This document shows, piece after piece, positions 1 to 16,745 of a stretch of 20,810 nt of DNA. Every line of letters starts with the position of its first letter. Position 1 is the stretch's first letter. This DNA is from Octopus sinensis. Lineage: Eukaryota. Location: NCBI RefSeq assembly GCF_006345805.1, contig NW_021823772.1, forward strand, positions 1 through 20,810, read 5' to 3'. Both the position numbers and the translations under genes were made by a program. The notes beneath the pieces are model-generated. The model was not told the DNA's origin, did no database searches, and saw nothing but the letters and a program-made list of their open reading frames with translations.

Positions 1-1056
1 CACCTACTGACCTACTGACCCCAATATGGTTTTAACCTACTGACCCCAACTTCACCTACTGACCTACTGACCCCAATATGGTTTTAACCTACTGACACCA
101 ACTTCACCTACTGACCTACTGACCCCAATATGCTTTTAACCTACTGACCCCAACTTCACCTACTGACCTACTGACCCCAATATGGTTTTAACCTACTGAC
201 ACCAACTTCACCTACTGACCTACTGACTCCAATATGCTTTTAACCTACTGACCCCAACTTCACCTACTGACCTACTGACCCCAATATGGTTTTAACCTAC
301 TGACACCAACTTCACCTACTGACCTACTGACCCCTATATGCTTTTAACCTACTGACACCAACTTCACCTACTGACCTACTGACCCCAATATGCTTTTAAC
401 CTACTGACCCCAACTTCACCTACTGACCTACTGACCCCAATATGGTTTTAACCTACTGACACCAACTTCACCTACTGACCTACTGACCCCAATATGCTTT
501 TAACCTACTGACCCCAATATGCCTTTTACCTACTGACACCAACTTCACCTACTGACCTACTGACCCCAATATGTTTTTAACCTACTGACACCTACTTCAC
601 CTAGTGACCTACTGACCCCAATATGTTTTTAACCTACTGACACCTACTTCAAATACTGACCTACTGACCCCAATATGGTTTTAACCTACTGAAACAAACT
701 TCACCTACTGACCTACTGACCCCAATATGGTTTTAACCTACTGAAACAAACTTCACCTACTGACTCCAATATGGTTTTAACCTACTGACACCAACTTCAC
801 CTACTGACCTACTGACCCCAATATGGTTTTAACCTACTGACACCAACTTCACCTACTGACCTACTGACCCCAATATGGTTTTAACCTACTGACCCCAACT
901 TCACCTACTGACCTACTGACCCCAATATGGTTTTAACCTACTGACACCAACTTCACCTACTGACCTACTGACCCCAATATGGTTTTAACCTACTTACCCC
1001 AACTTCACCTACTGACCTACTGACCCCAATATGGTTTTAACCTACTGACCCCAATA
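1..1056. repeat. Tandem satellite, 52-bp unit, ~20 copies, probably continuing left of the window
   Basis: Unit CACCTACTGACCTACTGACCCCAATATGGTTTTAACCTACTGACCCCAACTT restarts at 1, 53, 105 and so on. It is built from three CCTACTGA-headed modules (8+25+19 nt) and is strongly C-rich and G-poor on +. Confidence 0.97.
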
Positions 1057-1820
1057 AAAAAAAAATTTTATGCATTTTGGTTAAAATGAACAACTACGAT
1101 GTCCTCGACTTACATGATGAAAACCTTAAAACCTCCCCCCAAAAAAAATTAAAAAAATTTTTTCTGTATTTTGGTTAAAATGAACAACTACGATGTCCTC
1201 GACTTACATGATGAGGTCCTTAAAACCTTCCCCCAAAAAAAATTAAAAAAAATTTTCTGCATTTTGGTTAAAATGAACAACTACGATGTCCTCGACATTC
1301 ATGATGAGGTCCTTAAAACCTCCCCGCAAAAAAATTAAAAAAAAAATTTTCTGCATTTTGGTTAAAATGAACAACTACAATGTCCTTGACTTACATGATG
1401 AGGTCCTTAAAACCCTCCCCTCAAAAAAAAATTAAAAAAAATTTTCTGCATTTTGGTTAAAATGAACAACTACGATGTCCTCGACTTACATGATGAGGTC
1501 CTTAAAACTTTCCCTTCAATAAAAAATTAAAAAAGAAATTTTCTTCATTTTGGTTAAAATGAACAACTACGATGTCCTCGACTTACATGATGAGGTCCTT
1601 TAAACCTTCCCTTCAATAAAAAATAAAAAAAAAAATTCTTCATTTTGGTTAAAATGAACAACTACGATGTCCTCGACTTACATGATAAGGTCCTTAAAAC
1701 CTTCCCTCCAAAAAAAAATTAAAAAAATTTTTTTGCATTTTGGTTAAAATGAACAACTACGACGTCCTCGACTTACATGATGAGGTCCTTAAAACCTTTC
1801 CGCCAAAAAATCAAAAAATT
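1057..1820. repeat. Tandem satellite, ~95-bp unit (93-97), 8 copies
   Basis: The core TTTTGGTTAAAATGAACAACTACGATGTCCTCGACTTACATGATGAGGTCCTTAAAACC recurs at 1075, 1169, 1262, 1356, 1451, 1548, 1643 and 1738. Cores are separated by C/A/T homopolymer tracts of variable length. Confidence 0.96.
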
Positions 1821-1823
1821 ATT

Positions 1824-2510
1824 AGTATACTTGGGAGTAATGTCCCCCCTGTGAGGACAGTCCTCTGAGTAGTATACTTGGGAGTAATGTCCCCCCTGTA
1901 ACGACAGTCCTCTGAGTAGTATACTTGGCAGTAATGTCCCCCCTGTAAGGACAGTCCTCTGAGTAGTATACTTGGCAGTAATGTCCCCCCTGTAAGGACA
2001 GTCCTCTGAGTAGTATACTTGGGAGTAATGTCTCCCCTGTAAAAACAGTCCTCTGAGTAGTTTACTTGGGAGTAATGTCCCCCCTGTAAGGACAGTCCTC
2101 TGAGTAGTATAGTTGGGAGTAATGTCTCCCCTGTAAGGACAGTCCTCTGAGTAGTATACTTGGGAGTAATGTCCCCCCTGTAAGGACAGTCCTCTGAGTA
2201 GTATAGTTGGGAGTAATGTCCCCACTGTAAGGACAGTCCTCTGAGTAGTATACTTGGGAGTAATGTCCCCCCTGTAAGGACAGTCCTCTGAGTAGTATAC
2301 TTGGGAGTAATGTCCCCCCGTAAGGACAGTCCTCTGAGTAGTATACTCGGGAGTAATGTCCCCCCTGTAAGGACAGTCCTCTGAGTAGTATACTTGGGAG
2401 TAATGTCCCCCCTGTAAGGACAGTCCTCTGAGTAGTATACTTGGGAGTAATGTCTCCCCTGTAAGGACAGTCCTCTGAGTAGTATACTTGGGAGTAATGT
2501 CGCCCCTGTA
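1824..2510. repeat. Tandem satellite, 47-bp unit, ~14.6 copies
   Basis: Unit AGTATACTTGGGAGTAATGTCCCCCCTGTAAGGACAGTCCTCTGAGT starts at 1824, 1871, 1918, 1965 and so on. One unit is 46 bp, and the last partial unit ends at 2510. Confidence 0.97.
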
Positions 2511-3010
2511 GTGAAATTTTTTGACATTCGGTTATGGAAATGGTCACAAATTCGATCAAAGTTGGTTGATTGTTTACAGGATGTGGCCAAATATATTCGA
2601 GAGTAAAGATGGGCATGTAAATTGTCCAACAAATTGATTTAAAATTTAATTTTTTGTTCAACGTGACATCAAAATCAACGTGTATTGCAAGAATATTATT
2701 AAAATATCGAACAGTAAAAATCAAACAATTAATTATATTTCCTCGATTATGCACTTCTGCTCGAGTTTAGACAAGTTTGTTCTTTTAAACGATTTCTCAT
2801 TATTTGCCCTTTTCGAATTATCACGTTTCTTGAAATTATAAAATCTTGCCGTCATTCACTGCATTTTTCGTTTAATTTAAAATGAGATATTTTATGCTCT
2901 CTAATGTCTTTCTTAAAACCAAGTGTCTGTGGAATGTTAATTGATTTACAAAAATTCATTCTTCGAAGAAAAGAGTGACCTACATTGTAAGAGATTCAAA
3001 AATTTATAAG

Positions 3011-3909
3011 AATAAAGTGATTAGAAGTGCTTTTAATTCCGCGGGATTCCCGTCTATCCTGGAACCGGTTGGTGTCTTTCGGGCTGATGAAAAATCGAGC
3101 CACACACTTGTCATGGAAATTCTACGCTCTTTTTCTGAATTTTCCTTGGACACAAATGTGACGCATTTCAGCGAAGTCTGGAGGGAACAAGGTCTTGACT
3201 TTCCAGAAAATCGAATGTCTCAACGAGCCTGGAATCGAATTAGATGCAAGCAAACTTTCAATCTGCTGCTCGAGTAGTCCAACCAGCACCGCCGCGCTTG
3301 CCTTCTTTCGGCAGCATCCCCAGCTAGTTGAGCTTGGCTTTGTGCATTCCCGAACGGACTCTCCTCAACGATGAATTAATAAGGATCGGAATCTCTCTCG
3401 GGGTAAGGCAATATGTCTCTCACGTTTGTCGTTGTGACTGCACTGTTGACTCTTTTGGTCTGCATTCTTTATTGTGCAGGAGGAATGCCGGACGTTTTCC
3501 GAGGCACTTTGCTATGAATGACATCATACGTCCTGACGGGATGACCCTTTTCCTTTTTGAAGGCGGAAAAGGTCTCGTATCGGATGCAACCTGCTGGGAC
3601 ACTTTTTCTACTTCACATTTAATTTCATGTGCTCTGGAGGCTAAATCTGCTTCTAAGAAGGCTGAAGATTTAAAGCTATCCAAATATTCTGTCCTTTCGG
3701 AGAAGTTTTCCGTGGTGCTGATAGCGGCGGAGACGTCGGGTGCTCTTGGTTCAAAGACTGAAAAGTTCCTCCGCAAGCTTGGAGCAAAAATCTCAATGCG
3801 CACTCACGATCCTCGGGAGGTGGAGTGGCTAATGCAACTGTTCTCGATCGCCGTTATCCGGGGAAACAGTTTGGCAATCCGCCAGGCTGCTGGCCTTTCC
3901 TTCGATTAA
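3011..3909 (+). mobile_element. Degenerate 3' end of a CRE-like non-LTR retrotransposon (zinc knuckle plus restriction-like endonuclease)
   Basis: Motifs appear across stops and frameshifts: QRAW, QHRRACLLSAA, CRCDCTVDSFGLHSLLC (CCHC), RHFAMNDII, RPDG...DATC...KYS, AAETSG, DPRE, SIAVIRGNS. No RT domain or TSD was found. Confidence 0.8.
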
Positions 3910-5729: not shown

Positions 5730-6923
5730 ATGAGTTTAAAGGAATTTTTAATAAAAACGACAAAGTTGATCAAATCCTCAATTCCCGACCAAGTCCATTT
5801 CATTGTCGGAAATGAATCATGCGATTTGGATTCTGTCGTGTCCGCAATAGGATTGGCCTACTACTACCATTTCGCTTTTCCAGAATGGACCTGCATTCCT
5901 GTTTGTAATACTCACCGTAAAGAATTACCGACGAAAACAGAAGTGGTGTATTTATTCCGCAAAATGGACATACACGACTCTCTGTTGGTGTGCTTTGATG
6001 ACTTGAATTTTCCTTTCTCCACAAATCCTCAATCCACAAGGCTATCCTTGGTAGACCACAATTTTCCCGTCGGATTCTCAAAACGACTTTCTGGATGTTT
6101 ATTTTCAGTAGTCGACCATCACCAAATCACCGACGAGTCTTCACTCAGTCTAATCCCCGACCACGTTTTCATTCACAAAGTGGGGTCCTGTTCGACATTG
6201 GTAGCCGAAAAAGTGCTCACTTTGACACCATTCGACACAATTTTAGCCCAGTTGTTATATGGTTGGTCTTGTCAGCCAATTTAGACACAATCTTGCTTGA
6301 TTGCGCATTCACTGACCACAAAACGTGTTCTAAGGGTACTCCTAGAGATCTGGAGATGATTAATACTCTGAAGATCTGCTTGGTAGGGATCCGAAGGAGA
6401 GGCATCTCATATCCCGAGAATTATGGTCTGCTAGGAGCGACCTGTCAAGTAATCAAAATACTTATTAGATTTAACTTTCGAACAAATACTCAGGAAAGAC
6501 ATGAAGGAAATTCAGCCAAACCCGAACCGTCCTTCAACACAAATTGCATCAGTCCCCCTCAAACTCGATGTTGGCTTTCATTTATATTAGCTAGGAGTTG
6601 ATTAGAATGGTTCCGGAATTGGATCAGGAGATTGAGAATTATTCAAAAAGCAACAATTTGGACTTTTTAATAATTCTGACTTGGTTTTGGATGACTCAGG
6701 CTTCGAACGAGGAATAGTCGTACACCACAGTTGTTTGATGCGTATGAATGAGGAAAGGGTGGTGATGTTTATTTTGCAGTTCGTTGACCGTCTTTGTAGT
6801 CGAATCAATCTTGGTCTGTCGATGAAATTCCCCACTTGTCTTGTTTTTAGACAAGAAGATCAGTCTAGTTCCAGAAAAGTGCTTTCTCCTGTATTTTATG
6901 ACATAATTCAATCTTTGAATTAA
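5730..6923 (+). CDS. PRUNE1: PRUNE-family DHH/DHHA2 exopolyphosphatase, with micro-introns and two apparent 1-nt frameshifts
   Basis: Motifs GNESCDLDS, LVDHN, VVDHH, VGSCSTLV, TILLD, DLSNLTFEQILRKD and SSRKVLSP. Introns at 6262-6284 (23 nt), 6449-6468 (20 nt), 6570-6594 (25 nt) and possibly a 21-nt one ending at 6779. Frame breaks near 6369 and 6685-6688. Confidence 0.88.
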
Positions 6924-7033
6924 TAAATTTCATTTTTGTTTACATAATGGTAAACTCGAACGACAAAAGAGGACTAATAAGTACTGAACAAATCGATATT
7001 AATTGATAACGAGTGATTAGTAAATAAGTCCTG

Positions 7034-7162
7034 CTAGTAAATTTGATACTTATTGTAGTATTGAACAAGCAATGTCTTCAACTCTTCTTGTCCCTGGGAG
7101 TCGAGGTTAACCAGAGGAGCTCGGACAGGTCCCCCGTAAAGTCCAATCACATCCAAGGCAAA
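7034..7162 (-). pseudogene. HOGA1: Detached C-terminal part of the last HOGA1 exon, left of the LINE insertion
   Basis: The minus strand reads FALDVIGLYGGPVRAPLVNLDSQGQEELKTLLVQYYNKYQIY*. This matches the HOGA1/DHDPS C-terminus (human, recalled: MDWFGYYGGPCRAPLQEL) and continues the frame broken at 11316-11328. Confidence 0.85.
7150..7162 (+). repeat. Left target-site duplication, CATCCAAGGCAAA
   Basis: An identical 13-mer lies at 11316-11328, on the other side of the LINE. Confidence 0.9.
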
Positions 7163-7234
7163 GTTCTCTTAGGTGTTTGTGACGTGGTGTTCTTGTGAGC
7201 AAAATAAAAGAAAAATACTAATAACAATTTCACA

Positions 7235-8350
7235 ATGAATTATTCAAAATCCAAGAAGAATTTTAAATCCCCGAATATCCAGGCTTCTGTGCCATCAATC
7301 TCGGCTTCTGTGCGCTCTATTTCGGCCTCTGTGCCTTCTATCTCGACCTCTGTACCATCTATCTCGGCCTCCGTGCCATCTATCCCGGCCTCCGTGCCAT
7401 CTATCCCGGCCTCCGTGCCATCTGTATGCCTGAGTATTGTACTATCAATACACAACTCAGAGCTCGATTCTATTGAGATAGCAAACACACTTTGTGGTTG
7501 TGAAATCGCTTGTAAGGCTCGAGTGACACGTCGTCACTCGGGCGACTACGTTTTGGATTTCAAAAGTAAAGAGGATCTTTCGGCCTTTGTTGACTACTGT
7601 AAGTATACCCAGCCCTTTGGACCAAATGGCCACAAAATCGAGGAGGCAAAGCCACGTGCGTCCGCGATAATGCTTAGGAACCTCCCGAACTGGGTTGGAA
7701 CCGAGGAACTTGTAAAGTATCTGGGTAAACTAATCTCTCCGGGGTTTTTGGTTGAGAGATTTTTCCGAAATGGAAGTCCACTTCCTCTGGCTAAAGTGAC
7801 CATCCCCTCTAGGGGTGAAGCAGCCTCTCTCATACGAATGGGGTTGAAAATTGGTTTCCGCGAAATTTTCTGTAGTTGGTACAAGCAACCAGACACGCAA
7901 TGTTTCCGCTGCCAGCGTTTCGGACATATCTCACGGTTCTGTAAAGAAAAAGTGAGATGTCTCATTTGTGAGGGCCCACATACCCGTTCGGAATGTCCTC
8001 TGACTGGAAACTACCCTACCAAGTGCATAAACTGTGGATCCTCAACACACATGGCCAACTATGGAGGATGTCCTGTTGTCAAGGAGCTTCTTAAAAAGAG
8101 ATTACCTCGGAAAACTACAGATCAGTCTACTAAACTGAAATTTGATACATCTCCCGCAATGAAAATACAAGGAAAAACGATCAAAACTGAAACAGGAAAC
8201 GTGAAAGTACAAAATACCTGGAAAGGATGGAACTTTAATAAAAGTACAAAATTCGTGGATGCTGAGGTTCAGACTGACGATATCTCTGAATCCATGTCAA
8301 ACACTTTGAAAACTGCGACACCCACTATATCTACGCAAAAACAAAATTAA
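7235..8350 (+). CDS. LINE ORF1 gag-like nucleic-acid-binding protein (probably extends to 8616 through frameshifts)
   Basis: Three knuckles: CFRCQRFGHISRFC, CLICEGPHTRSEC and CINCGSSTHMANYGGC. A pre-knuckle segment NLPNWV...LAKVT and an N-terminal heptapeptide repeat are also present. Confidence 0.88.
   Translation: MNYSKSKKNFKSPNIQASVPSISASVRSISASVPSISTSVPSISASVPSIPASVPSIPASVPSVCLSIVLSIHNSELDSIEIANTLCGCEIACKARVTRRHSGDYVLDFKSKEDLSAFVDYCKYTQPFGPNGHKIEEAKPRASAIMLRNLPNWVGTEELVKYLGKLISPGFLVERFFRNGSPLPLAKVTIPSRGEAASLIRMGLKIGFREIFCSWYKQPDTQCFRCQRFGHISRFCKEKVRCLICEGPHTRSECPLTGNYPTKCINCGSSTHMANYGGCPVVKELLKKRLPRKTTDQSTKLKFDTSPAMKIQGKTIKTETGNVKVQNTWKGWNFNKSTKFVDAEVQTDDISESMSNTLKTATPTISTQKQN
7283..7423 (+). 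repeat. 21-bp (7-aa, ASVPSIS) coding minisatellite in ORF1, ~6.7 copies
   Basis: Reads ASVPSIS ASVRSIS ASVPSIS TSVPSIS ASVPSIP ASVPSIP ASVPS. Confidence 0.9.
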
Positions 8351-8612
8351 AGTTGGAACAAGGCGTAAACACAACCGAATATATGACTCAACCCAAAAAG
8401 AGGCATGAAACTCGGGGACACTTCCAAATCAAACCCGGGACAACCACCATGCAACATACAGGTGGCAGATAAAAGACAAATGCAATTGAACATTTAAAAG
8501 CAAAACTGGAGGACCTCCATCTTAAATCGAAAACGACGACTAAAAAAACGTTTAAAAATTTACTGGAACTGGTGGCGCTCGTTATGGAGGACAGTCACCA
8601 AAACTTGACGAG

Positions 8613-11202
8613 ATGAGCGTTTTTACGCTTATCAACGCCCGGTCAATTCGGAAACGGGCTACGGAGCTAACCTACTTGGTTAGCTCGGTAAACATGGACA
8701 TATTGGTTGTTAATGAAACGAAGCTTAAGGGAAATCAGCATCATAAAATCCATGGTTTTCAGTCGATTGATATCCCATGGCGACCTGACGCAGTGGCTGG
8801 CACTGGGACATCCATATATTATAAAGACAATCTGATGGTGAGGGACTTGAAAATCGTCGAACAAAATTTGTGCGAACTGATTACATTGAAACTACTAACA
8901 TCCCTTGGATGGATATCTGTCGGAGCTATGTACTCCAAAGCAATGAAGAATTATCAAAATCTTATTGAAGAATTTTTCCAGAACAATGATAGAGGAATTC
9001 TAATAGGAGACCTTAACGCAAAACACACATCGTACGGATGTGCCAACACAAATTCGGACGGTAATATACTCCTCAGATTATCGGAGAACTGCGGTTTTAG
9101 TGTTTTGACCTCACGAGAACCAAACCACTTCTCTTGTTATGGAGAGGATTGTATTGGAGTTTTCCTCGTATCGGCAGATCTTGTTCATCAATGCAGCATA
9201 CCAAGGATTGAGATAAACATTGGTAGTGATCACCTACCTCAATCCTTGTGTATGCGAACATCATCTACGATATGCGAAGATCTGTTTATCGGATACGATA
9301 CGTCTCGGACAATCTGGTCGGACCTTGAGGTATCAATGAAAAAGCATTTGACACCGTATCCAATACAAAACATCTCTTCGAATATACAAATTGAAAAACT
9401 TGATAAAATTCTCAGAGAAGCTATACTGGACTTTCTCCGAAAATCTTCAATCAGGAAATACATCATGTCAAATACTAACAGAAAAACCCGGATTGACGAA
9501 TCTTTGGGAAAACTTATAAAATGGAAGGGAAACCTTGAAAAGAAGCTAAGACGATGCAGTGACCCCATAGATCGTATTCGTCTTCGGATAAGATTCGTAC
9601 CGTGAAAATAGAGATAAATGATGTCGCAAAAAAACATTCAGACCTTGCTTGGAAGAGTCAATGCTCGAAACTGAATAAGAAAAACCCTCATTTTTGGAAG
9701 GTTTTCAACAGACTGAGTAATATGGAGAACAAAGGAGAAGAGATCCGACTAAAAACAACTGAAGGAATAGATATCCCGCTCGATGAAGTTCCCTCACATC
9801 TGCGAAGTCAACTGGCAAAAGTTCAAGAGGTGGATCCGATCGACATGGTTCCGAAAGAAGTTATATGTGAGGCTCAGAGAAGTCTAAGAGCTAATTTGAG
9901 TCATACGGGACCACTGTGCAGAGACATAACGTTGGAAGAAACGTATGCCGCAATTATGAGCTGCAAGAATAATGCACCCGGCCATGACTACATTCCAATT
10001 TCTGTATTCAAACATGCTCCAAATATTCTCCTACGATACTTGACCGCACTATACAATGCAAGCTGGAGACTTGGATACGTACCGGACTCTTGGAAAAAGT
10101 CAATCGTACGTATGATTCCAAAGCCTGGAAAAATAAAGGACCATGCAGAGAACTATAGGCCGATAAGCCTAATATGCTCCGTCTCTAAAATTATGGAACG
10201 GATTGTCTTCACAAGACTTTCGAACTTCGTAGAGGAATCAGGTGCACTTGCAGTAGAGCAGTGGGGATTCCGACGAAAAAGATCCTGTGGTGATTGTTTC
10301 GGAGAACTCGAGAAAGTCATCTCGCTTAGTCTTGCTAATAATACAGCGACTATTGCTATCTGCCTCGATGTCTCAAAAGCTTTTGACAGCGTATGGCACC
10401 TGGGCCTCTTGGAAAGTGTCGCCAAGAGCAAACCCGGGTCTAAAACGGTCAATTGGCTGAAGAGCTATTTATCAATGAGAAGGTCATACATACGATGCGG
10501 AAACCGTTTGTCGGAATCTGTCGATCTCAAAAGAGGGGTACCTCAAGGCTCGGTCTTGAGCCCCCTGCTTTTTAATATTTACGTTGCTGATGATTCCAAA
10601 ACCGAAAGATCCTACCAGTCGTCTCATGATCTACGCGGACGACATATTAATAACGGATGCTTCGTGGAGAAAAGAAACATCTCGTGGAGGAAGTTAAAAG
10701 GATACGTGACAAGAGTGGAAGAATGGTGCATATCAAAAGGACTGACGCTTGCAAAAGAAAAGTGCACCGCCACTTGGATTGCAAAACAGGGAGCAAAACG
10801 AAAACCGCCGAGAAACCTCTATGGGTTTACAGTAACGGAGAACCTGAAATACCTTGGGGTTGAAGTTGGATCCAAGGGTTCTTACTTCAGATACATCGAC
10901 TCGAGGAGAAGGAAATGCGCTCAAATTCTCAGGAGCATAATTCACTTCCACCTTCCCCGGAAACGTTTTTATATGTTTATAAAACGTGCGTCGAACCATT
11001 GCTTACCTACGGGTTCGAGGGATGGTATCCTACTGCTGAAAGGGATGGCATTATCGCTAAGCTCGAAAAGACGAGGCGATATGCCATCAAATTGGCAAAT
11101 GGACTCCAGTTGGACCAACCCATCCCTCAAGTGATGGAAGACGCGACGGAAACGGTTGGAAGTGTTCTTGAGAGAGCCTTTTCTTCTCGAATTAAATATT
11201 AA
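8613..11202 (+). CDS. LINE ORF2 (APE endonuclease plus reverse transcriptase) with four apparent frameshifts
   Basis: APE motifs INARSI, VVNETK, GDLNAKH, SDHLP. RT motifs YRPISL, QWGFR, CLDVSKAFD, GVPQGSVLSP, YADD (10632-10643, in a shifted frame) and YLGV. Frame breaks near 9600, 10590, 10660 and 10950. No RNase H or C-terminal zinc finger was seen. Confidence 0.9.
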
Positions 11203-11289
11203 AAAAAAAAAAAAAAAAAGAGGGAAACAACGAAGAAGAGGCATACGTTGTCTCATTAACTTTCTCCCTCTTTTTTCGGCTTTTCCGTT

Positions 11290-11318
11290 AATAAAAATTC
11301 ATTCATTCATTCATTCAT
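11290..11318 (+). repeat. LINE 3' end: AATAAA followed by an (ATTC)5 tail
   Basis: AATAAA at 11290-11295, then ATTC x5 at 11297-11316, running into the right TSD. Confidence 0.8.
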
Positions 11319-11328
11319 CCAAGGCAAA
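11316..11328 (+). repeat. Right target-site duplication, CATCCAAGGCAAA
   Basis: Identical to 7150-7162. The first bases overlap the ATTC tail. Confidence 0.9.
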
Positions 11329-12243
11329 CTTATACCCGGCAGAACAAGATTTTTTTTGCAACCTTCATGACTGAGCAATAATAGAACGAGGTGATTGAGT
11401 GGAAGAAAGCTCTGCTGCAACTCAAGAGCTTCCTGGAAGGACGATGACTGGAGGAGGGAGTACAACCTGCAGGCTGATCGAGGGAGTACTCCCGCCAACG
11501 AACTGATGCAGTATTGGCTCCTGTGGGTAAAGAAAAAAGGTGTACCCGCAACGTAGGCAGGTAGAAGAAGGGAGGCGGAGCCCATAAAGACATTAAACTC
11601 ATAGTTTTTAGTTAGAGAGACGACTTGTGATATTTTGATGATCTGAGATTATAAAATGAGACTCACATCTCCGCCGCTCTCTTGCAATCCGATTATATTT
11701 GGGTGTTGAGCCATTTCGGCAATGATTTGTGAGTCCATATCGATGCCCGTGAATTGAGTAATGTTGTACATAATGACGGGGAGGGGCGAGGCGTCGGCCA
11801 CCTGAATAAATTACAGCACTCTCACCTCGTTGAAGTACAAACGAAATGAGTCAGTATTCATTTGTGGTTTGTAGTAGTATGGGGGTTTCACCAGCACTGC
11901 ATCCACCCCACAGTCCGCCAGTTGGTTTATTTGCTCGATCGTTGCCCTCGGGGCTGCAGTTATACTTAACGGATGTACTTTCATATCCAGCTCCCGAAAT
12001 CAATACTTTGCTACTATTCAAAGCTTTTCTGGCAGTGCTCACTACTTGGATACGTTCGGATGGACTCAGTAGAGGGTATTCTCCGTTCGATCCGATCATG
12101 GTTATTCCATTTATGTCAGTCTCGTTCCACTTGCCAATATTCTCGGTCAGTTTTTGGGTGATAACATTGCCTTTATCGTCGAATGGGGTTGGGATAGGCG
12201 GAATGATCCCTCTTATTTTGCTTATATATCTTCGTGAAGCCAT
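11316..12243 (-). pseudogene. HOGA1: HOGA1-like 4-hydroxy-2-oxoglutarate aldolase (DHDPS family), 5' part, interrupted by the LINE
   Basis: Motifs GIIPPIPTPF, GSNGEY, GAGYE, PPYYY, VADASPLPVIMYN, QHPNIIGLQESGGD, FMGSA and CISSLAGVL. Introns at 11954-11978 (25 nt), 11802-11825 (24), 11643-11666 (24), 11521-11545 (25) and 11363-11387 (25). Small indels near 11512 and 11330-11355. The catalytic Lys reads Gln. Confidence 0.87.
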
Positions 12244-12780
12244 CGATGTGTGAATAATACTACTCAAAGATCGTGCCACTCCGATTTGTGGTTTGATATT
12301 TAATTGATGTACTTTTATTTTTTTTTTTTTTAATTTTGTTATTTATTAAATAAATTAATCATTATTTAAAGCTAATAATATTTCATACTATCTACAACTT
12401 TATTTTCATAAATAAACTACTGGTGGCATCGTGAAAGTGCTTATAATAATAATAAATAAACTACTCTTATAAAAATTTCAAGTAATCTTATTCATGGTTT
12501 ATCGAGTTGTTCACAATTAAGTAATATTCTACATTATCCGCTTTAAAATTCTTATCTTTGGTTAAGAATAAAAATAATCGTTCCACTTCGTACGATGTAG
12601 CCTGACATTTAATCAACAAAGAATAATCTATAGACGTAAAATAACAGAATAATTAACTTTATTGTTCTATCTCTGGCCTGTGAAAAATTTGTCTAGCATA
12701 AGCGAAAATTTTGTCACCTAGTTGTTGTAGATGGTTCTTCCGAGTTCATCATTAAGTTTTAGTTTTTCTGATTTTTTTGT

Positions 12781-13566
12781 CGCGCTGGTATTTTTACAGC
12801 TGATACGTTTGCGCTTCCTGCATGTAGCCTTTTTAAACGAACTCTCTGGATTTACCGGCCGACGACCTGCAGGAATTTCGGACCACAGCCAACTTCCCAA
12901 TTCCTTCTGAGATGTCCAGACAGAGGAATTGAGACGAGATCTGGGCAGCACACTCCTTTTCCATGCTACAGCCGCTACTGGACCAACATCGCCTGGCGTG
13001 CTTGCTTTCTGCAGTTCACAAACACATGACTCCTGACTCGACGCCTCCCAGACGCCATCAACGGGCTTGTTATTGGATGACGAGAATCTCCGAATTCGAG
13101 TTGCTCTTCGGTTGGGTATTGATATCTGTACGCTCCGTTGTTGTCGCTGGAGGAGTATGGTGAATGTGGAAGCCGCCCGAGCACAGGCCGCACGCCTCGT
13201 CACGGGGCACTCAACGACGTCATCTCGTAAGCACTCAATGTTGCCAGGTTTCTTGAATTTACTCAAACTAGTCGGTCTGGACAGGGGGGACGGCAAGCCT
13301 CTAAATAGGATAGCAACCTTCTTTCTCCGTAATGGCAAATGCCACATTTAGGATGCTACGTGTACAATTTAGTCCCCATCCGCATCTTCTCCTGGATCGG
13401 CTGCGGTTTTTGCAAATTCAACATAACGGAAAAGTGCAATCAAATTGCCCCTCAACATTTCTCTGTCTCTCCGATATTCGAAACCTCCGGAGCCTTCGGC
13501 TTGCAAAAATCAAAATTTCTGAAAAACGTCTCCCACATTATCGCTCGAGGATGTTCTCTGGCAATG
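12781..13566 (+). mobile_element. Second degenerate CRE-like retrotransposon 3' region
   Basis: Motifs across frameshifts and stops: AGIFTADTFALPA, LLDQHRLACLLSA, LLDDENLRIRVALRLG, HGALNDVI, VGLDRGDGK, DATC, FETSGAFG, IIARGCSLA. Colinear with the copy at 3100-3909. Confidence 0.75.
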
Positions 13567-14533: not shown

Positions 14534-16745
14534 CTAAAGGCCACCTTGAGAGCTAATCTCCTCGTTTTTCCAGTAGTTTTATAATTCTTGCCTTAGAAAG
14601 GGACAAGATCCGCCCTTCCAGCCCAGACATCACCACAGAAAGAATGACTACCCGGAAAATAAATAGCACAGTCTCCGGGGTAGTTTGATTAGGTCCATAA
14701 TCATTTGTGTAAACATTTCATTAAAAAAATTAGACTTCCAGGTACAAAAACGATTAGCTCTTCCGAATAGATTCAATCGTATATGGTAAGGTTTTTGCAC
14801 TTCTTGCTTATACTTTAGTGAGCGTGCACTTCTCAATTAACAGAGTCAAGTACTTCAATACCATCCACTGTTTTATTTGCTTTAAGTAGATTTTAGTTTT
14901 ATTTCCGACGTCGTCGGAAGGGCTGCCTCGTTCGTGATAATAACGTCATCAGCATAAAGGAATACATTCGTTGAGATGCACACAGGTTTTTGGAAAGTCT
15001 GCCATGTACACGATGAACAAAAATGGGGTGAGAACTGAGCCTTGAGGTACTTCCTTTTTTGAAGAATAACTTTTGAATCTTAACCAAGATATTTGACAAA
15101 GGAGATCCTCCCATTCAAAAAACTCGCTAACTATCAAGGGTTTCTGCATCGACATCACAATATTCAAGATTTTCCAGCAAGATTGAGTGACAGACACTGT
15201 CGAAAACCTTCGACACATCCAAGCAGACAATACTGTTCGATAAGCCAGAATCTCGTGCCTTAGATACTATCGAATTCAGTCGATAGATGAAGTCAGCAAG
15301 GTTCGGCCCGGACGAAAACCCCACTGATCGTGAGAGAGCCAGTGATTCTATATGCAATACTAGACTTCTATATATGATTTTCTCCATTATCTTTGATGTA
15401 GATCAAATTAGACTTATAGGCCTATAGTCCAAGGCTTTTTTAAATTTCTTAGGTTTTCGAATTATTCGAACTTAGGTTTTTTCCATGATGTTAGAACGGA
15501 GGCTGGAATTGTAGAGTTTTGTAAGCACAGACATCAAACAAATCAGTGCATGCTTAATACAGGCCATTGGAATCTTGTCATATACTGGGGCCGCATTTTT
15601 GACTACGCTTATTACTTCTCGAGTCTCAGACTCAATAATCGTGTAACGTTGCAATCTGCGTGTGTAGTTTGCTGGAGGACGCTTTGGTAAAAAGGCAGAT
15701 GGATCTGCTTCCGAAACAGCTGCGAGCTGATTGCGGAGGATTTCAGTAATCTCCTCTTGGATCGAGAGGCATCCTCTCAGACGTCATTAATGTTGAATAC
15801 AGCATTATAGTCATCATCTTGGAAGTATGATCACCGCCGATGTTTTCGATTTTCCTCGTAGGTTTGCATAAGAGCTTCAATGAGGGTGAAGTTAGGAACA
15901 GCCGTAAGAAATCATCTCCATGACATGAAAAATAATTTGGCTCTTCCGATGTTTAAACATCAAAACCAACATGATCGGATATAGCTCGCAGGCTTTTTTT
16001 CTACTGAAGATGGGCATTTAGAATTTAGATTTCCAGCAATTAGTGAAAATTGATTTTCTTTAAAGAAATCAGCAATTAAGTTTTTGTTTTCAGCTAATTT
16101 CTTATAGTAAATTCCCCCAAGCAGAACCCATTCCTGTCTACATTAAAACTCGAGAGACAAAAATTTAAAAATAGTTTCGTTTTCTATTCTCAAGTTTTCC
16201 ATCTTTAACCAATCATATAGAAGATGACCGTGCCAGCAACTGGACACCATATGAAGTATAGCCATCCAAGGTATATCATTCCATGTTTTTATTTTGACTC
16301 GTTTACTACTAAAATATCCGGCTGATGGAAAGCCACGAGCCGGATTAGCTCGGAAGGCCGTCTCCATATTGATCTGACATTTAGGAGGATGACCACAAGA
16401 GAGCCTTTTACGCCACCATCTCTCGTAAATATCGATCTTTTTCGTTAGAGATCACATCGTTCTATCCCAATTAAATGATTTCCCCCTCAATTGATTTAAG
16501 TCACCTGTCTATCGACATATTGAGTTCCTTTTTAAGGATGACTTCTTTTTGAGACCCCTGCCTTTCGTTGTTTTTTGTTCCGGAATTAATTTTGAGACTT
16601 CTGCTGCTTCCAGATCTATAGTCATTATATTTGAGTCCGTAGGCTCATCCGTTTGGGTTCCAATGGATACACTGCTTTTAAAGACTTCTGTTTACAGACG
16701 ATTCTTCCAAAAATGGAGTCACAGTTTGCTGTTTCTTCCAAGCTG
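14534..16745 (-). mobile_element. Older decayed LINE related to the 7163-11315 element (ORF1 tail plus APE-RT), with an internal deletion
   Basis: The minus strand gives LLNVRSIWRRPSELIRLV..DILVVNESK, GWVLLGGIY..IAGNLNSK, IGGDH, ILRNQLAAVSEADP, KNAAP, CLDVSKVFD, VPQGSVLTP, YADD (14945-14956) and PETVLFIF, all colinear with the first LINE. It has many stops and frameshifts. Confidence 0.85.

Follow-up and report, generated by a model that had tools for sequence, protein, structure and literature searches.

A young LINE insertion in the last exon of a HOGA1-derived gene that had probably already lost its aldolase function, in an apparently dicyemid-like genome

Long interspersed nuclear elements (LINEs) of the apurinic/apyrimidinic endonuclease (APE) type, as in the Jockey, CR1 and I groups, have two open reading frames (ORFs), of which the first encodes a protein with CCHC knuckles and the second an AP endonuclease and a reverse transcriptase (RT). 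They are without long terminal repeats and are flanked by target-site duplications (TSDs) of variable length, and in the "stringent" LINEs of the CR1/L2-like type a stem-loop in the 3' untranslated region (UTR) is followed by a short microsatellite tail. LINEs may disrupt exons, as in the L1 alleles associated with human disease, where a de novo-type insertion with a TSD truncates an ORF. Here we analyze a stretch of 20,810 nt, hereafter called the window, which is filed under Octopus sinensis (NCBI RefSeq assembly GCF_006345805.1, contig NW_021823772.1, positions 1 to 20,810 of the forward strand), and in which a LINE interrupts a gene of the HOGA1 family. HOGA1, a mitochondrial 4-hydroxy-2-oxoglutarate aldolase, performs the last step of hydroxyproline catabolism and is mutated in primary hyperoxaluria type 3. 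On the basis of sequence comparisons, we put the probability at about 0.7 that the LINE was a later hit on a dispensable HOGA1-derived gene that was already catalytically dead and either decaying or repurposed. The locus would then differ from the human L1 alleles in that the target gene was apparently inactive before it was struck, and in that the host is a repeat-rich, gene-poor genome that most likely belongs to a parasite.

The element lies on the plus strand, antisense to the last coding exon of the minus-strand gene, and the two copies of a perfect 13-bp TSD, CATCCAAGGCAAA, sit exactly at its ends (Table 1). Read on the minus strand, the duplicated sequence encodes F-A-L-D plus the first base of a Val codon, and the insertion point falls between the Asp of ...YKFALD and the Val of VIGLYGGPVRAPL.... 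When joined, these flanks match the alignment of orthologs with zero gaps. With the element present, the frame reads FALDE followed by a stop inside the tail repeat, and the 38 C-terminal residues (VIGLYGG...KYQIY), which include the invariant positions G-Y-G-G-P-x-R-x-P-L, are cut off. A first-pass annotation had already described an antisense LINE in the last HOGA1 coding exon, the position of the TSD and its coding of FALD, the premature FALDE end and the loss of 38 residues with the GPxRxPL segment, and these descriptions were borne out by the Pfam domains of the element, the homology of the flanks and direct reading of the TSD and the frame.

As a control for spacing, pairs of segments set at the same distance were slid along the whole window, and 2 of 439 placements had a word of 13 nt or longer in common, both of which we assume to be located in satellite arrays. 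No long direct or terminal repeats were found within 6500-12800. The tail, a (TTCA)n repeat at 11298-11315, abuts the right copy of the TSD, and since the first 3 nt of this copy (CAT) also fit the register of the tail repeat, the length of the duplication is best given as 10-13 nt. The overlap suggests that reverse transcription was primed by a microhomology of 3 nt. We conclude that this is a genuine retrotransposition event with a TSD and a tail.

The following sequence of steps is proposed. A young copy from an active LINE family of the APE type would have inserted by target-primed reverse transcription, in antisense orientation, into the last coding exon of the HOGA1-derived gene. The endonuclease would have nicked the coding strand of the gene after ...TTGGATG, whereupon the 3' ATG would have paired with the CAU end of the tail of the element RNA and primed the synthesis of cDNA, and a second nick 10-13 nt away would have given rise to the duplication. 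The outcome would be a coding sequence that ends within the tail repeat and is shortened by its last 38 residues. We also considered the possibility that the element is spliced out, or bypassed by an alternative 3' end, so that the full-length protein is still made, for which we found no supporting evidence. The minus-strand 13-mer TTTGCCTTGGATG contains no GT, the base after its upstream copy reads A, the sole GC donor position would require an intron that ends in TT, and no canonical intron removes the element precisely. Moreover, the introns of the host are here 23-25 nt long, against 4.2 kb for the element. Judged from the sequence, rescue by splicing is not plausible.

The age of the insertion could be estimated from a second copy of the element. 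A search with the RT of the LINE gave one near-identical protein (99% identity), annotated as "uncharacterized protein LOC115229389 [Octopus sinensis]," and a sister copy is present at positions 8487-12615 of another contig (GCA_006345805.1, VCDQ01013128.1, 428 kb), here called L001. The two copies have unrelated flanks and are 99.59% identical over 4,137 nt, with 5 substitutions and 11 gap openings between them (window 7179-11311). Since its insertion, the window copy can thus have diverged by no more than 0.12% (5 substitutions over 4.1 kb), and at this rate the coding sequence of the gene, of 921 nt, would have undergone no more than about one substitution in the same time. By this measure the insertion is young, in agreement with the earlier suggestion that it is recent. 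The sister copy is also informative about the quality of the junctions. A chimeric or collapsed-repeat join, at a locus that is in truth uninterrupted and reads TTTGCCTTGGATGTGATTGG, might be suspected because such assemblies are error-prone at the base level and near-identical copies of a family could mislead an assembler. However, a misjoin does not duplicate 13 bp of unique coding sequence perfectly, with one copy exactly at either end of a complete element, and the 5' junction is located within about 16 nt of the start of the similarity to the sister copy and the 3' junction at the end of the tail. We therefore consider an assembly artefact to be very improbable.

The interrupted gene belongs to the HOGA1 family. 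The best match of its protein among solved structures is human HOGA1 (3s5o, E = 1e-58), whereas entries for DHDPS reach 5e-32 at best, and the Pfam domain DHDPS is matched at 8e-46. A hidden Markov model (HMM) built from 7 orthologs matches 12222-11968, 11951-11346 and, beyond the element, 7159-7061. Homologs numbered 4,833 at E <= 1e-20, and the comparisons below use the best 120 of these, which are 38-44% identical to the protein, cover 92-97% of it and in many cases are named 4-hydroxy-2-oxoglutarate aldolase. In a neighbor-joining tree without bootstrap support the protein falls, on a long branch, into a clade of 13 members that includes all four named animal HOGA1 proteins. The likeness to human HOGA1 comprises the signature of the DHDPS fold over the whole length, GSNGE, the equivalents of Tyr140 and Tyr168, Ser198 and GGPxRxPL. 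Differences are the replacement of Lys196 by Gln, changes at 8 of 53 near-invariant positions, the lack of a long presequence and, in the coding sequence, the interruption by the LINE and two 1-nt frame defects in the sequence as assembled. The protein has 9 residues (12243-12217) before the conserved core, as in bacterial homologs and unlike animal HOGA1, which carries a mitochondrial presequence of 25-50 residues. The gene is split by five GT-AG introns of 24-25 nt, all of which appear as insertions or frame jumps in comparison to every homolog, and two of which contain in-frame stops.

An indication of the state of the gene before the insertion comes from its active site. Lys196 is the essential Schiff-base nucleophile of human HOGA1 (PMC3188589). 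The corresponding residue 171 of the window protein is Gln (K171Q, codon CAA at 11684-11682), while the column is Lys in 120 of 120 homologs, so that their motif G-[IM]-K-[DE]-S-G-G-D reads GLQESGGD in this gene. Of the 53 columns in which at least 95% of these homologs agree, 8 in total are changed (V105, F125, T146, Q171, M196, Y212, A255 and C259). The chance that the specific base change from Lys to Gln arose after the insertion is about 4e-4, and the element is too young for all eight replacements to have followed it. The loss of the lysine and the other replacements would thus almost certainly have preceded the LINE, and the gene was very probably non-functional as an aldolase by then.

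These considerations bear directly on the proposal of the first-pass annotation, namely that the gene encoded a working HOGA1 and that the LINE is its primary, recent and possibly polymorphic inactivation. The young age of the insertion is as expected under this scenario, the exons are free of stops, the active site is for the most part preserved, and assembly errors may account for the two frame defects. Against it stand the Gln at the position of the essential lysine, the seven further changes at near-invariant residues and the low divergence of the element, which leaves no plausible room for all of these changes after the insertion. A knockout of a working enzyme was in this sense not borne out, and we regard it as unlikely.

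Apart from the LINE, the reading frame of the gene as assembled has defects of its own. According to the first-pass annotation, removal of the element rejoins PGI(K)FALD. The flanks do align without gaps, but PGI and FALD are in different frames in the reconstructed empty site, and the "(K)" hides a mismatch of 1 nt. In the best reconstruction (353.5 bits), all five mini-introns are spliced out and the frame is corrected twice by 1 nt: a base is added where exon 4 ends (GCGG/GT, in the G run at 11546-11548), and the A8 run at 11350-11357 is shortened by one A. The earlier reading scores 331.9 bits and canonical splicing of the sequence as assembled 295.9 bits; the latter gives an ORF of 921 nt and 306 codons, in which the -1 and +1 shifts cancel and the 44 residues of exon 5 are out of frame. 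We enumerated every combination of GT/GC-AG introns on the joined flanks, and rejected as ancestral structures the continuous ORFs that need no edits (these rely on an "intron" of 17 or 59 nt, or on canonical splicing that leaves exon 5 out of frame), which score 22-58 bits lower than the best reconstruction.

We suspect that such 1-nt differences are errors of the long-read consensus, because young repeat copies in these contigs differ mainly by indels of 1 nt. The repeats shared between L001 and a second contig of the same "O. sinensis" assembly, L002 (VCDQ01000570.1, 854 kb), differ by 2 mismatches and 12 gaps (L001 14672-16605), whereas an older pair of repeats within L001 (3135-4415 and 17578-18857) differs by 39 mismatches and 1 gap, which is the normal evolutionary pattern. 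Furthermore, 7 of the 11 indels between the two LINE copies involve G, and the two defects in about 1 kb of the HOGA1-like gene fit the rate of about 1.5 frame lesions per kb in ORF2 of the window element. The published assembly of the dicyemid Dicyema japonicum merges in a PacBio RS II Falcon assembly (PMC6736024). The disruptions of the frame in the gene (two) and in ORF2 (four) are by this comparison most likely technical, and we have not counted them as decay of either. For a substitution such as that from Lys to Gln, a technical origin is much less likely. The neighboring DHH/prune-like gene was tried as a control for assembly indels and rejected, as it is too divergent for frames to be assigned (DHHA2, E = 0.011). 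The general lesson is that 1-nt frameshifts in long-read contigs of this kind should not be read as biology.

Several points weigh against the hypothesis that the LINE struck a gene that was already dead and dispensable. The equivalents of human Ser77, Asn78, Tyr140, Tyr168 and Ser198 are retained (in GSNGEY, PPYYY, VIMYN and QES), and no exon of the HOGA1-like gene contains a stop codon. Open exons and preserved active-site residues imply either that neutral decay before the insertion was short or that there was selection for a non-catalytic role. The Gln codon is known from a single assembled sequence. The age argument presumes one neutral rate for the LINE copies and the gene, and that the copies were not homogenized by gene conversion. 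Finally, should the 1-nt indels be genuine mutations, our argument may underestimate the age or the decay of both the LINE copy and the gene.

The retained features raise a further possibility, that the gene had become a conserved but inactive pseudoenzyme derived from HOGA1, which was under selection until the LINE truncated it or which tolerates the truncation. The exons are open, the identity to the homologs is still 40-44%, and at the active site the nucleophile alone has been replaced, through a single-base change, with the other residues kept. However, constraint cannot be measured from one sequence, the 38 lost residues hold the invariant GGPxRxPL block of the family, and P146, G212, G259 and T255 have changed in a manner that suggests relaxed constraint. 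We hold this explanation to be quite unlikely, and favor the hypothesis of an insertion into a gene whose aldolase function had already been lost. The event itself is an ordinary LINE insertion in a repeat-rich genome.

The element is structurally full-length, with a 5' leader of 72 nt and a spacer of 260 nt between the two ORFs. ORF1 is intact and encodes three zinc knuckles of the CCHC type, CFRCQRFGHISRFC, CLICEGPHTRSEC and CINCGSSTHMANYGGC. Near its N-terminus is a tandem repeat with about 7 units of 21 nt, encoding SVPSISA-like heptads, which spans 7282-7423 according to Tandem Repeats Finder (TRF) and extends to 7428 in a second repeat search; it is also conserved in the L001 copy. ORF1 had no Pfam match at E < 0.001, and a homology search returned only four weak matches, none of them from the same family, and no close relative. 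An ORF1-like protein with the same layout of CCHC knuckles, clearly diverged, is encoded on the minus strand of L002 (2156-2737), and it seems that this group of LINEs includes several families in the same genome. The endonuclease part of ORF2 matches Exo_endo_phos_2 (5e-13) and Exo_endo_phos (7e-7) in Pfam, and the ORF at 9602-11134 matches RVT_1 (8.6e-30).

The description of the element as full-length in the first-pass annotation is correct for its structure, but in the sequence of the window copy ORF2 is broken at four places. Compared with the sister copy, one G is missing near 9585, which puts the frame into a stop at 9605. Further downstream there is an additional G at 10592, an additional AA at 10675-10676 and a missing T in a T run at about 10952; the +1 and +2 insertions, 83 nt apart, cancel, which leaves an ORF of 510 codons open and the YADD box out of frame. 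In the sister copy, YADD is in frame and all four lesions (9585, 10592, 10675 and 10952) are read through, its sole own lesion being a missing G at the equivalent of window position 10092. From this pattern it follows that the consensus ORF2 of the family is intact (about 860 residues) and was recently active. A run of 19 A at 11201-11219 overlaps the ORF2 stop codon, and a stem-loop is predicted in the 3' UTR, where 11214-11225 pairs with 11265-11276 (z = -3.0).

The RT, the N-terminal AP-like endonuclease, the TSD, the tail and the dispersed copies with different flanks identify the element as a LINE of the APE type. It shares with the Jockey, CR1 and I groups the features named at the outset, and no RNase H domain was detected; it is unlike them in that its (TTCA)n tail is preceded by the internal A19 run at the stop of ORF2. 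The stem-loop and the microsatellite tail resemble those of the CR1/L2-like LINEs, and the named database relatives of the RT are labeled "mobile element jockey" or "X-element." The pointers to a CR1/L2-like or a Jockey/I affiliation are indirect, coming from the tail and the stem-loop, the CCHC knuckles and generic hit names and not from a phylogeny of the RT. The best RT matches outside the family itself have an identity of only 30-42%. We conclude that this is a previously undescribed and recently active LINE family, with at least two copies that are 99.6% identical, in a genome of the dicyemid type. A second, degenerate LINE of another family is located on the minus strand at 14784-16396, where the endonuclease and the RT are broken into several frames and are 28-41% identical at the protein level to those of the inserted element.

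The identity of this genome is of interest in its own right. The five introns identified in the HOGA1-like gene measure 24-25 nt and that of the convergent DHH gene 23 nt, and the stops of these two genes are about 110 nt apart. Introns this small and a gap this short mean that the genes are organized in an extremely compact way. Apart from myxobolid myxozoans, D. japonicum, a dicyemid, is the only animal for which introns of less than 30 nt have been reported (PMC13644364). This parasite inhabits the renal sac of O. sinensis, and repeats make up 49% of its genome, with many LINE ORF2 copies (PMC6736024). The first-pass annotation, which raised the possibility of a reduced parasite genome, is supported as to the appearance of the host: the introns are of 23-25 nt, and the sister LINE is found in an assembly of O. 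sinensis, the host of D. japonicum.

The L001 contig, which carries the sister LINE, shares with L002 an rve element that is 99.9% identical, and L002 contains a GOLPH3-like gene (15886-16333) with GT-AG introns of 26 and 29 nt. Since the sister copy is filed under O. sinensis, we considered whether the LINE might have passed horizontally between octopus and parasite, and rejected this in favor of contamination, as the linked L002 carries this mini-intron gene. GC content and the ratio of observed to expected CpG did not separate the contigs. The HOGA1-like protein is at most 44% identical to proteins in the database, judged by the best 120 of the 4,833 homologs, and exact-protein lookups of five ORFs from the window (LINE ORF1, the endonuclease ORF, two versions of HOGA1 exon 1 and the ORF of the insertion allele) gave no identical record. 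From the introns and the sister copy of the LINE, the window and the "octopus" contigs L001 and L002 most likely derive from a Dicyema-like parasite. Parasite contamination probably accounts for large contigs in the public "Octopus sinensis" assembly, which matters to users of that assembly, and RefSeq entries such as XP_029655612 and XP_029655613 would then probably be proteins of the parasite. A literature search found no report of dicyemid contamination of the octopus assembly.

Table 1. Coordinates of the features discussed in the text; positions refer to the window.
Feature	Position	Strand	Basis or remark
LINE, non-LTR retrotransposon, 4,153 bp	7163-11315	+	leader, ORF1, spacer, ORF2, 3' UTR, microsatellite tail
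LINE ORF1, 371 residues	7235-8350	+	motifs read directly
LINE ORF2 part 1, AP-type endonuclease	8613-9605	+	Pfam
LINE ORF2 part 2, RT and C-terminal region	9602-11202	+	Pfam, comparison with L001
LINE 3' UTR	11203-11315	+	follows ORF2 stop directly
TSD, left copy	7150-7162		
TSD, right copy	11316-11328		
HOGA1-like exon 1 (MASRRY...GAGYE)	11979-12243	-	HMM
Mini-intron 1, 25 nt	11954-11978	-	GT-AG
HOGA1-like exon 2	11826-11953	-	HMM
Mini-intron 2, 24 nt	11802-11825	-	GT-AG, in-frame TAA
HOGA1-like exon 3, active-site motif	11667-11801	-	homolog alignment
Mini-intron 3, 24 nt	11643-11666	-	GT-AG, in-frame TAA
HOGA1-like exon 4	11546-11642	-	3' end one base short for the homologous frame of exon 5
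Mini-intron 4, 25 nt	11521-11545	-	GT-AG; read through, an 8-residue insertion (TPFFFTHR) relative to every homolog
HOGA1-like exon 5	11388-11520	-	homologous frame SQYCISSLAGVL...LPLNHL; out of frame with canonical splicing as assembled
Mini-intron 5, 25 nt	11363-11387	-	GT-AG
HOGA1-like exon 6, upstream of insertion	11329-11362	-	VAKKSCSAGYK, homologous reading
HOGA1-like exon 6, detached part	7034-7162	-	FALD-VIGLYGGPVRAPLVNLDSQGQEELKTLLVQYYNKYQIY, stop TAG at 7036-7034; HMM
Satellite array, 52-nt unit	1-1057		strongly C-rich on this strand
Satellite array, 95-nt unit	1058-1818		
Satellite array, 47-nt unit	1823-2510		
DHH-family (prune/exopolyphosphatase-like) gene	5730-6925	+	converges on the HOGA1-like gene

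Elsewhere in the window, three satellite arrays adjoin each other across 1-2510, and the long ORFs over the array with the 47-nt unit are artefacts of the repeat. In the DHH gene, the 23-nt GT-AG intron is located at 6262-6284, the DHHA2 domain is weakly matched in Pfam at the value given above, and the frame switches downstream of the intron are not resolvable into introns or indels. ORFs of 100-209 residues at 2975-3909 on the plus strand and at 12718-13350 on both strands, including 3328-3909 and 12718-13347, had no match in Pfam. They are located next to the HOGA1-like gene, on its promoter side, and possibly derive from other mobile elements.

Our findings suggest an order of events in which the catalytic residue was lost before the transposon arrived. 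The earlier idea of gene loss in progress in a reduced parasite is reasonable in a broad sense, and the short introns fit a parasite host, but the insertion does not appear to have been the primary inactivation. No paper on HOGA1 pseudogenes in parasites was found in our literature search. A bolder scenario, which we consider quite unlikely, is that the protein with Gln171 is a conserved dead pseudoenzyme of dicyemids and that the LINE allele is a segregating loss-of-function polymorphism. If this were true, the locus would show LINE-driven gene loss while it happens, in an animal genome that is among the most reduced, and it would touch a pathway that produces glyoxylate and oxalate in a parasite that lives in the urine of its host. 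Taken alone, the insertion represents one more transposon-struck exon in a genome of which about half is repeats, and it changes little. Its modest value is that a metabolic gene seems to have been caught in the middle of its loss, with the catalytic residue gone first and the transposon following later.

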